A stretch of DNA of 64,000 bases. Source: Octopus sinensis (taxonomy: Eukaryota). The position numbers and the translations under genes were made by a program. Of this stretch, positions 1,464-59,969 are shown one piece after another (positions within the stretch are counted from its first letter, which is position 1; each line of letters starts with the position of its first letter). The stretch is from positions 13,082,001 to 13,146,000 of the forward strand of contig NC_043013.1 in the NCBI RefSeq assembly GCF_006345805.1, written 5' to 3'. Under the pieces are notes generated by a model. That model saw only the letters and a program-made list of their open reading frames with translations. It searched no databases and was not told where the DNA came from.

Positions 1464-1534
1464 GGATGTGGTCCAGCAGCAGACTTCATGGCATTTGCTA
1501 ACCAAACAGAATTTGATGTAGACGAAGATGATGG
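1464..1534 (+). CDS. Unit A exon 7 (phase 0-2): [24 protein letters not shown]
   Basis: Poly-T tract + cag acceptor, gtatgt donor; paralogous to 44839-44918; corresponds to the TRPM GSGRxAD segment. Confidence 0.85.
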
Positions 1535-58500: not shown

Positions 58501-59969
58501 CAGCAATTTTTAGGGGAATGGTTAAATTAATACCATGAGCACCAGCACTTGACTGCTACTTTATTTTATCAAACTCCAAGAGGACAAAAGACAAAGATGG
58601 CCTCATCAAAAATTGAACTCAGAATGTTAAGTATCAAAAGTAATATGTTTTAACAATTCTGCCAGCTCATCACTATACTGCCATTGTTTTTTTAAATTTT
58701 GAGGAAATTTTAAATAATTGATAATATTTATGAAAAAAAATTCTTTGGCTCAGTGTCTGATACTAATTTGATGAGACCTTTGCATTTGCAGGCAACAGTC
58801 ACTGACATGTTTTGGTACTTTATTTTAATGACTCCCCAACTCCAGAAAGACAAAATGAAAGGTTGAGCAATGTAAAACTTGAACTCAATATAAATACTTG
58901 AAGCTAATACCACATGGTATTTTTTCTGACCCGCTAATGATCTTGTTGTTTACATATTTTAGTCTAATTAGATTTCCTCAGCAAAGCATAGCCTTCATCG
59001 GAGCTTGTCTTTTTCTTACTCACCACATAATTATTATTAATTAAGAACAGTTTTTATCAATTACTATGTTGGCTAATGCTGAGAATACATATATTTTGCC
59101 AATCCAGGTAATATCAGGTAATGTTACATAACTACAATAATTATAATCATACATTTTCAAATTTCATAGAAAATGAATGCTAATTTTCAAAATAAAAATA
59201 TTTTTGAAATTAAAACATAAATTTTAATAGATTTTTCTGATTTGTTTATTTGTAATGTGTATATACTATCAATAATGATAATACTGTTTATATATTGAGG
59301 AACTACATTAGTAATAATATCTGATACAGTTAACTGTGACAAATACACATACCCAATATTACCTTTCATATGAATTTAATTGTACAGTAAGCAAGGGGGA
59401 TAAATCCAATAAGATCAATATTATCTTTCCTTGGGCAAGAGGGGAACAAATAGAGAGAGAGAGAGTGAGTGATAAAAGGAGACACACAACCGGACATCTC
59501 ATGCAGTTTCTTTTCACATCTACTTAATTCAATTTTTATATTGTTAGTGTGGGGATCTAGTCTAATGGACACAAGAGATGTGTGTATCAGTGGTACCTGG
59601 ATAGGGTGGAAAGAGAGCAACCAGTTCTGTGGAGCAGAGGCTATTGTAGTAGTGGTAAAAAAGGCAAAGAGAGGACACAGCACAACTATAGGTCAGAATT
59701 TAGTGTGTATTGGTAAGTGACTTCATGCCAGTCTTATGAGACCTGTATGTGTAAGAGCAGCATCATCCCAGATGTGGAATCACTATTCCCCAGTGTGCCT
59801 CATTTTTCTCCATTTACTTCTGATGGCAAAATGTTTCTTTGCTTTTCCTTTTAAGTTCATTTGGCTTTTGTTTGTCTTTGATAGAAACCTTAGAGACGAA
59901 GAGGCATCAAATCCCTGTGATGCATTTGGTGAGGTAAAGTTTGTAGAATATGATCAGAAAATTGCAAAG
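1464..59969 (+). CDS. TRPM: Internal part of a multi-exon TRPM-family-like gene encoding at least 3 tandem MHR1/2 (SLOG)+partial MHR3 modules (14 exons in window; both gene ends lie outside it)
   Basis: The exons listed below join with matching intron phases into 1539 nt with no stop. TRPM motifs: [103 protein letters not shown]. Family assignment only; the ortholog cannot be assigned. Confidence 0.88.
2855..3039 (+). CDS. Unit A exon 8 (phase 2-1): [61 protein letters not shown]
   Basis: ttctaag acceptor, gtaaga donor, open frame; TRPM L(I/L)TV...D(L/V)AIL.AL.K-like motif; paralogous to 46231-46415. Confidence 0.9.
4000..5320 (-). mobile_element. R4/Dong-like non-LTR retrotransposon RT fragment
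   Basis: [14 protein letters not shown]; [11 protein letters not shown]...[14 protein letters not shown]...YKYLGI (ORF 4233..4565). Confidence 0.8.
5400..6180 (-). mobile_element. R4/Dong-like 3' fragment (restriction-like endonuclease region) with (AAC)n/(AAT)n tail
   Basis: Degenerate RPDI...DK...ID.SCP and [17 protein letters not shown] motifs on the minus strand; tail at 5400-5445. Confidence 0.65.
6349..6443 (+). CDS. Unit A exon 9 (phase 1-0): (A)[31 protein letters not shown]
   Basis: attacag acceptor, gtaaga donor; resembles the MHR3 QL.LAxxWNRxDIA motif; paralogous to 50098-50192 with homologous flanks. Confidence 0.85.
8330..9960 (+). mobile_element. Penelope-like element (RT + GIY-YIG), frameshifted
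   Basis: [25 protein letters not shown] and [36 protein letters not shown]; C-rich composition distinct from the flanks. Confidence 0.88.
11011..11042 (+). CDS. Unit B micro-exon 1 (phase 0-2): [11 protein letters not shown]
   Basis: tttattttcag acceptor, gtaatg donor; flanks homologous to those of 56260-56297; a 0-2 exon is required to join A9 to B2 in frame. Confidence 0.75.
13951..14032 (+). CDS. Unit B exon 2 (phase 2-0): [27 protein letters not shown]
   Basis: tttggtttag acceptor, gtaatt donor; PTDAFG-like motif; paralogous to 59885-59969. Confidence 0.85.
14300..14850 (+). mobile_element. Old RTE LINE RT fragment, also present at the paralogous position 60280-60810
   Basis: Degenerate match to 42550-43080 (EKAFDR-like and QFGF-like segments). 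Confidence 0.65.
14900..15235. mobile_element. Probable non-autonomous Helitron/Helentron-type interspersed element
   Basis: Contains gcagccgttttcgcgtg...(CA)n...tattttataca, a layout resembling DINE/HINE-type elements. Called by recognition only. Confidence 0.4.
16160..18990 (+). mobile_element. RTE-clade LINE (APE + RT), decayed
   Basis: [72 protein letters not shown]. Confidence 0.85.
19342..19525 (+). CDS. Unit B exon 3 (phase 0-1): [61 protein letters not shown]
   Basis: tttttcctcacatatag acceptor (the in-frame ag at 19352-19353 is an alternative), gtataa donor; MHR1 W..P.LLISV.GG...GL.KAA motif; overlaps ORF 19369..19605. Confidence 0.88.
20917..21056 (+). CDS. Unit B exon 4 (phase 1-0): (D)[46 protein letters not shown]
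   Basis: ttgtttcgcag acceptor, gtgagt donor; matches the TRPM AWIITGG..TGV.K.VG.A..DY...IGIA segment; overlaps ORF 20898..21083. Confidence 0.92.
21490..22960 (+). mobile_element. Helentron/DINE-like non-autonomous repeat: two tandem 244-bp units (from 21518 and 21762) plus a partial copy at 22826-22960
   Basis: Repeated block gcatacatttccaca..caaccgattttcaccaaacttta..acttatgtcc..gtcatgcacta. The family call is by resemblance. Confidence 0.5.
23245..23580 (+). mobile_element. CR1-like LINE 3' end, diverged relative of the 25399 and 28639 copies
   Basis: Similar to 26200-26530, ending ggtgcaccagcatggcctcagcc; lies between a (TC)n and a (TA)n tract. Confidence 0.6.
23581..25398. repeat. About 1.8 kb (TA)n/(TATATG)n microsatellite tract with short unique interruptions
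   Basis: Direct inspection; source of the YI-repeat ORFs. Confidence 0.98.
25399..26529 (+). mobile_element. CR1-like LINE RT C-terminal part and 3' UTR, 5'-truncated, with one frameshift
   Basis: [43 protein letters not shown]; [13 protein letters not shown]. Confidence 0.92.
26530..27295 (-). mobile_element. CR1-like APE endonuclease fragment, inverted against the preceding RT piece
   Basis: [43 protein letters not shown] (ORF 26497..27459). Confidence 0.9.
28005..29905. repeat. (TA)n/(TATG)n tract split by a CR1 3' fragment
   Basis: TA-rich at 28005-28638 and 29159-29905. Confidence 0.97.
28639..29158 (+). mobile_element. Second CR1-like 3' fragment with intact terminus and (taaggatt)x2 tail
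   Basis: Near-identical to 26057-26529; many of the differences are at CpG sites. Confidence 0.92.
30593..30749 (+). CDS. Unit B exon 5 (phase 0-1): [52 protein letters not shown]
   Basis: tttgatttctag acceptor, gtaaat donor; hallmark [14 protein letters not shown] motif. Confidence 0.93.
30911..31130 (+). mobile_element. tRNA-derived SINE, same family as 47007-47195 and 57061-57277; minus-strand relatives near 13010-13150, 13540-13690 and 58510-58665
   Basis: Shared gcag...gcagaatcattagcatgctgg head and ttgactttgc..tcc..gggg..taccagttg core. Confidence 0.65.
31860..33130 (-). mobile_element. Helitron RepHel (PIF1-type helicase) remnant
   Basis: Decayed Walker A ([13 protein letters not shown]), [15 protein letters not shown] and [22 protein letters not shown] (ORF 31881..32207). 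Confidence 0.8.
34400..34780 (+). mobile_element. RTE-type 3' UTR / RTE-tailed SINE with (GAT)n tail; shorter copies at 35810-36095 and 39960-40160
   Basis: Same terminus as 44230-44690 (aaaagcaccc..ttaggaagggcatc..gctgtagaaa..catggaaagcggacgttaaa-(gat)n). Confidence 0.8.
36499..36608 (+). CDS. Unit B exon 6 (phase 1-0): (E)[36 protein letters not shown]
   Basis: aattttag acceptor, gtcagt donor; KIP.V.V...GGPGT motif of MHR2/SLOG. Confidence 0.92.
37740..39880 (+). mobile_element. RTE LINE (APE + RT), heavily decayed
   Basis: [30 protein letters not shown]; collinear with 42040-43100. Confidence 0.8.
40780..41170 (+). mobile_element. R4/Dong-like 3' fragment with (CAA)n tail
   Basis: Degenerate CCHC-type and C-terminal segments similar to 47700-48230. 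Confidence 0.45.
41460..41740 (-). mobile_element. Probable Penelope-type terminal repeat remnant carrying a hammerhead-like core
   Basis: Minus strand reads ttgatgaa-gagc-tcc-gctc-gaaac (41583-41606). Confidence 0.5.
42040..44690 (+). mobile_element. 5'-truncated RTE LINE with PHD-finger insertion, 66-nt 3' UTR repeats and (GAT)n tail; absent from unit A
   Basis: ORF 42554..43159 ([20 protein letters not shown]), LLYADDL. Its flanks are adjacent in unit A near 1335-1345. Confidence 0.93.
44839..44918 (+). CDS. Unit B exon 7 (phase 0-2): [27 protein letters not shown]
   Basis: ttttctttaattatcag-type acceptor, gtttgt donor; SGRxAD motif; paralog of 1464-1534. Confidence 0.9.
46231..46415 (+). 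CDS. Unit B exon 8 (phase 2-1): [61 protein letters not shown]
   Basis: ttctaag acceptor, gtaaga donor; same length (185 nt) as 2855-3039; 42/61 aa identical by hand count. Confidence 0.9.
47007..47295 (+). mobile_element. Two abutting SINEs (47007-47195 and 47201-47295)
   Basis: The first matches 57061-57277. The second starts ggcgcagg..tggctgtggtaagaagcttgcttcccaaccac, as at 62621. Confidence 0.75.
47300..48860 (+). mobile_element. R4/Dong-like fragments (endonuclease part 47300-48230, RT part 48260-48860)
   Basis: [16 protein letters not shown]; [27 protein letters not shown]. Confidence 0.75.
49586..50046. mobile_element. Interspersed repeat with (CA)n tail (49586-49820), a (TA)n tract, and a minus-strand tRNA-derived SINE (49893-50046)
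   Basis: 49893-50046 is the reverse complement of the 62621-62770 family. Confidence 0.7.
50098..50192 (+). CDS. Unit B exon 9 (phase 1-0): (V)[31 protein letters not shown]
   Basis: atttcag acceptor, gtaaga donor; MHR3 L.L.WNxxD....I.....W pattern; paralog of 6349-6443. Confidence 0.87.
51560..52560 (-). mobile_element. Penelope-like element 3' part (GIY-YIG region), decayed
   Basis: [27 protein letters not shown]; IIAKPGKY...[13 protein letters not shown]...NSLN. Confidence 0.7.
53430..54120 (-). mobile_element. Second Penelope-like GIY-YIG remnant of a different family
   Basis: NPCTDRKC..C..DCKNKN...IYIRETKQ...[13 protein letters not shown]...QITEATHI...KLEW, with stops. Confidence 0.55.
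56260..56297 (+). CDS. Unit C micro-exon 1 (phase 0-2): [13 protein letters not shown]
   Basis: ttttattttcag acceptor, gtaatt donor; resembles the WIPENIKK motif at the start of human TRPM2 MHR1. Confidence 0.82.
57061..57277 (+). mobile_element. tRNA-derived SINE with 14-bp target-site duplication
   Basis: tattaaatatgagt at 57048-57061 and 57278-57291; empty paralogous site near 11930-11945. Confidence 0.88.
59885..59969 (+). CDS. Unit C exon 2 (phase 2-0): [28 protein letters not shown]
   Basis: tttgtctttgatag acceptor, gtaatt donor; PxDAFG motif; lies inside ORF 59736..60020. Confidence 0.9.

Follow-up and report, generated by a model that had tools for sequence, protein, structure and literature searches.

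A tandem array of TRPM2-type SLOG cassettes in Octopus sinensis changes at the intron rate with its reading frames kept open

Introduction

TRPM channels are usually regarded as slowly evolving, single-copy sensors. In human TRPM2, the MHR1/2 domain holds ADP-ribose (ADPR) via residues Y295, R302 and R358 (PMC6759353). Here, we studied a 64,000-nucleotide stretch of the Octopus sinensis genome (C17:13082001-13146000; the window), which lies within the NCBI gene LOC115221041. The product of this gene (P0002, 1272 amino acids) carries the NCBI label 'uncharacterized'. The window is part of a tandem array of nine-exon cassettes, each encoding one TRPM-type MHR1/2 (SLOG) domain. The exons of these cassettes change at the rate of the surrounding introns, with reading frames and splice sites kept.

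Several described systems can be compared with this organization. Short N-terminal TRPM isoforms, such as TRPM2-S and short melastatin/TRPM1, are channel-less and are reported to bind and damp the full-length channel. In apolipoprotein(a), kringle IV is made of phase-symmetric multi-exon cassettes, arranged in tandem and in frame and present in variable copy number. In the clustered protocadherins and in UGT1A, variable upstream exons precede one constant downstream part.

The octopus cassettes resemble the MHR1/2 domain of TRPM2 in their full-length match to the Pfam profile LSDAT_euk, in an alignment over about 310 residues and in their core motifs. They differ from TRPM2-type channels in that MHR3/4, the transmembrane part and the TRP helix are absent, and in that three or four SLOG domains are chained in each predicted protein; the ADPR contacts of TRPM2 are mostly replaced. 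With the short TRPM isoforms they share the character of a channel-less TRPM N-terminal protein, which by analogy offers a possible mode of action for a poly-SLOG protein. However, these isoforms arise by splicing from a single-copy gene and contain MHR3/4, whereas the cassettes are tandem genomic duplicates of MHR1/2 only. Compared with kringle IV of apolipoprotein(a), an octopus cassette is very large, its 9 exons extending over 45-65 kb, and the divergence of 25-30% marks the copies as old; in addition, the arrays were duplicated and inverted. As in the protocadherin and UGT1A loci, many upstream units lie before one common body. Here, however, a unit comprises nine exons and has no promoter or leader of its own, the constant part is 0.6-0.75 Mb off, past inverted arrays, and the arrangement is predicted from gene models.

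Surveys of TRP channels published in 2026, dealing with cephalopods and with metazoans and including octopuses, count channels and omit the SLOG-only array (PMC13402157, PMC13143021). A 2026 phylogeny shifts an octopus 'TRPM-like 2' into the TRPS family. Full-text literature searches returned no mention of a SLOG-only array.

Results

Organization of the array

The O. sinensis genome that was searched comprises 2.72 Gb in 13,516 contigs. The window is AT-rich (GC content 27-43%), and microsatellites and fragments of long interspersed nuclear elements (LINEs) are abundant. Self-BLAST of the window together with 160 kb of flanking sequence gave colinear tandem units with 66-80% nucleotide identity. 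Among these units, four full cassettes were recognized, named A to D, whose starts are about 37-65 kb apart. The window contains exons 7 to 9 of cassette A, the whole of cassette B (exons 1 to 9) and exons 1 and 2 of cassette C. Exons were assigned from an exact match to P0002, which is 100% identical to the DNA of the window and its flanks, and from a unique GT-AG solution at each junction.

A cassette consists of nine exons of 41, 85, 169, 164, 175, 113, 71, 185 and 95 nt, none of these lengths being divisible by three. Both ends of the cassette are in phase 0, and the complete cassettes total 1065-1131 nt, a multiple of three. In the P0002 model, leader exons are followed by the nine exons of A, the nine exons of B, exons 1 to 3 of C, exons 4 to 9 of D and an acidic tail with the stop codon. 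Consecutive cassettes are spliced in this model from exon 9 to exon 1 in phase 0. When P0002 was mapped, leader exons were found ahead of cassette A only and none before the other cassettes. The A-B-C-D chain is also predicted in gene models of O. bimaculoides (P0003) and O. vulgaris (P0004, P0005), so that the poly-SLOG architecture would be older than the split of the three Octopus species, provided that the gene models are right. A 5′ extension of exon 2 with its own ATG was considered and rejected, since the upstream open frame is nothing but the T-rich polypyrimidine tract, which translates into F, L, I and V.

Exons change at the rate of introns

The original prediction started from hand counts in a few exons, and these could be reproduced exactly. 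Over 117 codons, 45 carry an amino-acid change and 7 a synonymous change only. In the A versus B comparison, changing and synonymous-only codons number 7 and 1 in the first 16 codons of exon 7, 19 and 5 in all 61 codons of exon 8, and 13 and 0 in the middle 22 codons of exon 9 once a one-codon indel is placed; the last 18 codons of exon 2 in B versus C give 6 and 1. Exon 8 indeed differs at 27/183 nt (14.8%). The accompanying intron sample (13/90), whose position could not be located, sits at the low end of the A-B intron flanks, where the proportion of differing sites (p) runs from 0.138 to 0.434 with a mean of 0.25.

The claim that exons diverge at a rate similar to introns holds at full scale. 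Summed over all exons and pairs, p is 0.259 in exons and 0.255 in the flanking introns. The ratio of nonsynonymous to synonymous substitutions per site (dN/dS, ω) is 0.76-1.25 for all six A-D pairs, with 274-348 aligned codons per pair. The corresponding distances are 0.30-0.33 for introns (K80; p=0.25-0.27), 0.24-0.35 for dS and 0.23-0.39 for dN, and differences are spread evenly across codon positions 1, 2 and 3.

Maximum-likelihood codon analysis used 245 safely aligned codons in 8 sequences, namely A-D and four partial copies from a second, inverted array described below. With the GY94+F3x4 model, in our own likelihood implementation, the one-ratio model M0 gave an ω of 0.996; values of 0.7 (p=0.006) and 0.5 (p=3e-8) were rejected. 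A proper codon alignment thus places dN/dS at 1.0; a value well below 1 would have told against the original prediction. IQ-TREE without gamma matched the M0 likelihood and tree length to the third decimal. ω was homogeneous over branches, old stems as compared to young tips (0.77-1.14; likelihood-ratio test, p=0.97), and over exons (0.72-1.29, p=0.79). Comparison with the younger array copy, limited to exons 3, 4, 5, 7 and 8 (833 codons), gave 69 nonsynonymous (Nd) and 15 synonymous (Sd) differences, that is, dN 0.036, dS 0.029 and ω of about 1.2, with an intron K of 0.027 over 31 kb.

A comparison with an ordinary TRPM channel, made at the protein level, points the same way. Cassette proteins of O. 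sinensis and O. bimaculoides are 77-81% identical, as compared to 94.5% for an ordinary TRPM-like channel of the same two species and 96-97% for its SLOG part. The SLOG part of this ordinary octopus channel thus evolves about 5-7 times more slowly than the cassettes.

Exon 6 (36499-36608 in cassette B, and its homologues in A, C and D) evolves roughly half as fast as the other exons, at synonymous and nonsynonymous sites alike (relative rate 0.49, ω 1.29, p=0.149). The introns flanking it diverge to an ordinary extent (p=0.238), and neither protein-level selection nor regional rate variation accounts for the slow exon.

Reading frames and splice sites are kept

All 35 exons of A-D have an AG acceptor and a GT donor (70 dinucleotides intact), and all are open, with 0 stops in 1428 codons. 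Under neutral substitution with the intron spectrum, 4.5-8 stops would be expected per cassette. The probability of finding none is 0.0005-0.011 for a single cassette; for all four together it is about 1e-9 or lower. In a control with intron pseudo-codons, 182/3744 pairs (4.9%) had a stop in one copy, versus 0/1637 in exons. Exon lengths behave likewise: all 26 length differences among cassettes, of which 17 are non-zero, are multiples of three, as compared to 17-24% of intron indels, which occur at 14-18 per kb. In the second array and in O. bimaculoides, these frames are likewise open.

The earlier statement that frames and splice sites stay intact was thus borne out, with some qualification. 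Cassette C uses a shifted acceptor at exon 6, and cassette B is shifted at the exon 2 acceptor and the exon 4 donor. Within B exon 4, a +1/-13 frameshift pair is compensated within 30 nt. Because no exon length is divisible by three, any exon skip shifts the frame, which gives selection a reason to keep every splice site. The exons of the window, all on the + strand, are listed below; the range first described, 1464 to 59969, corresponds in the NCBI model to the start of A exon 7 and the end of C exon 2.

1464..1534, +, cassette A exon 7, 71 nt; start of the range first described
2855..3039, +, cassette A exon 8, 185 nt, 61 whole codons; the exon compared with B exon 8 above (27/183 nt)
6349..6443, +, cassette A exon 9, 95 nt; closes the cassette in phase 0, joined to B exon 1 by the model
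11011..11042, +, cassette B exon 1, 32 nt; has lost KKWIxENIKL, a motif that the other cassettes keep
13951..14032, +, cassette B exon 2, 82 nt; acceptor moved upstream as compared to A, C and D, from which it also differs by an 18-nt deletion
19342..19525, +, cassette B exon 3, 184 nt; the SLOG domain begins here, LSDAT_euk positions 9-63
20917..21056, +, cassette B exon 4, 140 nt; internal compensated +1/-13 frameshift, donor 12 nt upstream of its ancestral position
30593..30749, +, cassette B exon 5, 157 nt; 18-nt deletion
36499..36608, +, cassette B exon 6, 110 nt; includes ...NIPVVIVK, least diverged exon
44839..44918, +, cassette B exon 7, 80 nt
46231..46415, +, cassette B exon 8, 185 nt
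50098..50192, +, cassette B exon 9, 95 nt; the model joins it in frame to C exon 1
56260..56297, +, cassette C exon 1, 38 nt
59885..59969, +, cassette C exon 2, 85 nt; end of the range first described

Cassette B is the most degenerate of the four, having lost KKWIxENIKL, FVRVDH and GSWPA.Y. It is nonetheless open in both arrays of O. sinensis and in O. bimaculoides.

Domain identity and ligand site

Each cassette corresponds to one full TRPM-type SLOG domain (Pfam LSDAT_euk, PF18139; E 3e-49 to 3e-66). The scores are 219.6 bits for A, 168.4 for B, 201.3 for C and 224.1 for D, with a cut-off of 25.7, and the matches run from profile positions 1-9 to positions 248-263 of 266. A Pfam scan of P0002 gave three SLOG matches and no other domain; MHR3/4, the Ion_trans six-helix part and the TRP helix were not found in it. 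In the neighbouring full channel P0010, Pfam finds a SLOG domain, a TRPM2-like domain and Ion_trans. The P0010 gene (C17:13.776-14.41 Mb) is the only full channel of the cluster and is without a NUDT9H domain; its clade may be TRPM-beta or TRPS.

The closest solved structures are TRPM2 N-termini, from Nematostella and zebrafish, with E of about 1e-50 and about 310 residues aligned. With cassette C, the PDB chains 6co7, 7aov and 6mix gave 1.2e-50, 1.4e-49 and 9e-47, and other TRPMs 1e-45 to 1e-24. The core motifs LLISV.GG, AWI..G.H.GV.K.(I/V)G.A, LDPNH.HFILVD, IPAV..V.GG..T and GSG.AAD are discernible.

The positions that we take to be equivalent to Y295, R302 and R358, with the human numbering placed tentatively on the cassette alignment, are mostly replaced: they read F/R/P in A, gap/R/R in B, S/K/K in C and P/R/G in D. 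The channel-attached SLOG domain of P0010 has F/R/Q. These replacements, in the cassettes and in P0010, make canonical ADPR binding doubtful throughout the clade. Among the fastest-changing sites is the R358 position, which also has a high posterior in site models.

Possible selection on the frame or on a repertoire

The explanation that we favour, and to which we give about an even chance of being right, is selection at the level of the reading frame on a redundant multi-cassette gene, the amino acids of which are nearly free to drift. Judging from the anatomy, the 5′ part of a TRPM2-like channel gene would have been duplicated in tandem within the gene. Since exon phases are symmetric, the copies could read through in frame, giving a channel-less poly-SLOG protein. 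Over the roughly 0.3 substitutions per site accumulated since the duplications, exons have changed at the intron rate without a stop, a net frameshift or a splice loss. Selection would have acted mainly on the integrity of the long reading frame, as a nonsense mutation, a frameshift or an exon skip destroys everything downstream in the transcript. The sequence of a single cassette would be almost free because the SLOG unit is redundant, with four per gene and at least 13 on the chromosome. Starting from the observed anatomy, rates and conservation of frames, we infer that the cassettes are translated jointly and that redundancy is the cause of the drift.

To look at constraint along the domain, positions were classed by their conservation in 25 TRPM2 channels of other phyla, a split that is non-circular. 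In the old comparisons, conserved positions have an ω of 0.83, intermediate positions 1.07 and variable positions 0.96, and ω remains at about 0.8-1.0 even where TRPM2 channels are invariant. At conserved positions dN and dS drop together (NG86 by class). Gene conversion or regional rate variation was at first suspected behind this joint drop, but exon and flank divergence are uncorrelated (r=0.2). In young copies, the proportion of nonsynonymous differences (pN) at TRPM2-conserved positions is 0.029, versus 0.027 in introns.

Several results weigh against frame-level selection as the whole account. When gamma-distributed rates (+G) are added to both site models, M2a still fits better than M1a (2ΔlnL=6.3, p=0.044, stable across starts), with 39% of sites at ω 2.3. 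In young copies, pN at TRPM2-variable positions reaches 0.043, 1.6 times the intron value of 0.0266 (P=0.006), the synonymous proportion (pS) there being 0.017. Between species, TRPM2-conserved positions are replaced less (15.7% versus 26.5%, P=2e-4), mainly in C and D. Replacements are also slightly more conservative than an intron-calibrated null (z=2.2, P=0.014); this null was kappa x codon frequency, under which an intron pseudo-codon control was flat (z=-0.08). A null based on the intron spectrum, giving z=5.7 for exons, was discarded as wrong because intron pseudo-codons gave z=4.3. The in-frame chaining itself is a product of automatic gene prediction. When transcript-derived protein fragments spanning A and B were sought, only two genome-annotated paralogues were matched. 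Moreover, the C to D read-through is broken in this array, the model jumping from C exon 3 to D exon 4. This jump fits two lesions, both outside the window. Exon 9 of C is mostly deleted, only ...SDGTQWQ remaining (window coordinates ~92,560-92,600, C17:13.1746 Mb), and a C-D linker exon, whose counterpart in the second array is open, carries a stop (CGRRKKNNE*VD, ~98,604-98,639, C17:13.1806 Mb). In B and C, some exon borders were chosen so as to preserve the frame, and the statement that all length differences are multiples of three partly depends on this. Finally, redundant units are normally lost by deletion or decay and seldom kept open for so long.

The main rival, possible though on balance rather unlikely, is diversifying selection on a functional repertoire. 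Each SLOG cassette would then be a functional module for ligand binding or recognition, and ω near 1 would be the average of a constrained fold (<1) and many driven sites (2-4), a pattern known from immune and chemosensory gene families. The comparison of M1a with M2a without gamma points to it (2ΔlnL=38.2, p=5e-9; 21% of sites at ω 4.2), and so does the weaker signal that persists with gamma. It is also consistent with the young copies, where pN exceeds the intron value not only at variable positions but overall (0.035 versus 0.0266, P=0.018), with the conservative bias of replacements and with the sparing of conserved positions between species. The high-posterior site at the ADPR phosphate contact R358, which reads P in A, R in B, K in C and G in D, is a further argument in its favour. 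However, M0 with gamma rates (M0+G4; lnL -2656.6, ω 1.05, alpha 1.0) fits as well as M2a without gamma (lnL -2657.0), and the value of 5e-9 was therefore not taken at face value; M0+G versus M2a+G gives p=0.064. The ω values at TRPM2-invariant positions also speak against it, no exon has an ω that differs from 1, and cassette B shows no sparing of conserved positions (20.9% versus 25.7%). All these site tests use 4 old and 4 partial young sequences and have low power, with paralogue-alignment errors possible.

Overall, judged from the codon comparisons, the mean regime is change at the neutral rate plus a weak protein-level filter; positive selection on a minority of sites is possible but not secure. 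The original prediction of relaxed or diversifying selection on a still-translated protein stands in that the frames are held translatable at a dN/dS of 1.0. As regards the two alternatives, the evidence for diversification falls from p=5e-9 to 0.044 once rate variation is allowed.

The cluster on C17 and its channel body

Matches to SLOG exons span C17:13.06-13.86 Mb. A tally of these exon matches gives at least 13 cassettes on C17, plus pieces on unplaced scaffolds, with which the cluster would number about 15. A second A-B-C-D array, inverted, corresponds to LOC115221043 (P0001; C17:13.296-13.463 Mb, - strand). The leader-A-B-C-D-tail unit was duplicated and inverted as a whole, with an intron divergence of about 2.7%. 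More partial arrays were seen at 13.47-13.52 Mb (+), 13.540-13.556 Mb (-) and 13.776-13.860 Mb (+) and on scaffolds C9011 and C2662.

Channel-body exons close to those of P0010, with 78-95% identity, are confined to the + strand at C17:13.875-13.909 and 14.39-14.41 Mb; the remaining channel-body matches are more distant TRPM paralogues. The single channel body of the cluster thus lies about 0.6-0.75 Mb downstream, with inverted arrays between. Its split into two segments implies a huge intron or an assembly problem. With units that are SLOG-only and one channel body, the units are best read as duplicates of a sensor-domain cassette from the 5′ part of one TRPM2-like gene, not as paralogous channel genes. 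The framing as a repertoire of paralogous TRPM receptors thus finds no support: Pfam finds SLOG only, gene models of three Octopus species chain the units in frame in one gene, and there is one channel body.

This layout raises another explanation, which we regard as unlikely, in which the units would be alternative 5′ cassettes of one downstream channel. One cassette, or a chimera of two, would be joined to the body at C17:13.875-14.41 Mb. Many cassettes lie upstream of one body, on the same strand in the case of the present array, and gene models do join homologous exons across cassettes, as P0002 does from C exon 3 to D exon 4. P0010 combines a first half of the A type with another second half and the channel, and P0008 of O. 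vulgaris runs from a D-type cassette through the acidic tail to a further SLOG domain and the channel. However, the intervening distance and inverted arrays, the acidic tail with its own stop at the end of P0002 and the restriction of leader exons to cassette A all argue against such splicing, and the proposal rests wholly on automatic models.

A mix-and-match exon library is an improbable extension of the same idea. Exon n of one cassette would be spliced to exon n+1 of a later one, yielding chimeric SLOG sensors, soluble or on the channel, and divergence would be driven by selection for diverse nucleotide-ligand sensors. The shared exon phases make cross-cassette splicing possible, and two gene models contain such joins (C exon 3 to D exon 4, and an A-type exon 5 to exon 6 of another type). 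If true, a sensor domain of TRP channels would here be the basis of a combinatorial system for generating diversity.

Elsewhere in the genome, intron-less TRPM copies with several stops were found at C10696:17000-20700 (-; L001) and at C6303:928709-932003 and 952954-956248, the C6303 copy being present twice with equal scores. They cover SLOG through the pore and the TRP helix as a single stretch and are 34-41% identical to the cassettes. These copies look like processed retro-pseudogenes of another TRPM paralogue. The C10696 copy was considered as an intron-free template and rejected as too distant, with two weak exon matches only.

Intron 4 of cassette B contains kilobase-long imperfect microsatellites of the TA/TG/CA type (23480-25400, 27950-28650 and 29130-29900), which read YIYIYI... 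in all frames and swamp repeat finders. Intronic LINE-like fragments with Pfam RVT_1 and endonuclease-reverse transcriptase matches lie at 4233-4685 (-), 17673-18146 (+), 26497-27501 (-) and 42491-43159 (+). Another LINE-like piece, 25398-26529, has a 98% identical copy 135 kb downstream, in an intron of cassette D, and this identity shows that the element was recently active.

Discussion

It is very improbable that the cassettes are dead duplicates, that is, untranslated relics whose open frames and chained models are gene-prediction artefacts: the equality of dN, dS and intron rate in every partition tested, the failure of the search across the A-B junction to find transcript-derived fragments, the broken C exon 9 and linker exon and the motifs missing from cassette B would all fit such relics, but the missing stops, the frame-keeping indels and the intact splice sites, together with the frames open in the second array and in O. 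bimaculoides, exclude on sequence evidence a dead pseudogene and with it the recent pseudogene that could have undone the original prediction.

As regards annotation, the gene is at present 'uncharacterized', and its relatives are mislabelled as TRPM channels. A TRPM2-like sensor domain appears to have been freed from its channel, multiplied to at least 13 cassettes on one chromosome and chained into channel-less predicted proteins.

The evolutionary regime is unusual, with amino-acid change at the neutral rate over about 0.3 substitutions per site, yet with frame, splice sites and domain identity kept. The locus may thus offer a natural case for selection on 'being translated' without selection on the sequence itself. 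Redundancy within a repeat protein, an advantage in escaping nonsense-mediated decay and diversifying selection that stays hidden are candidate causes. Should the cassettes bind nucleotides, cephalopods would have in them a new class of soluble binders of ADPR or NAD metabolites, or of channel regulators.

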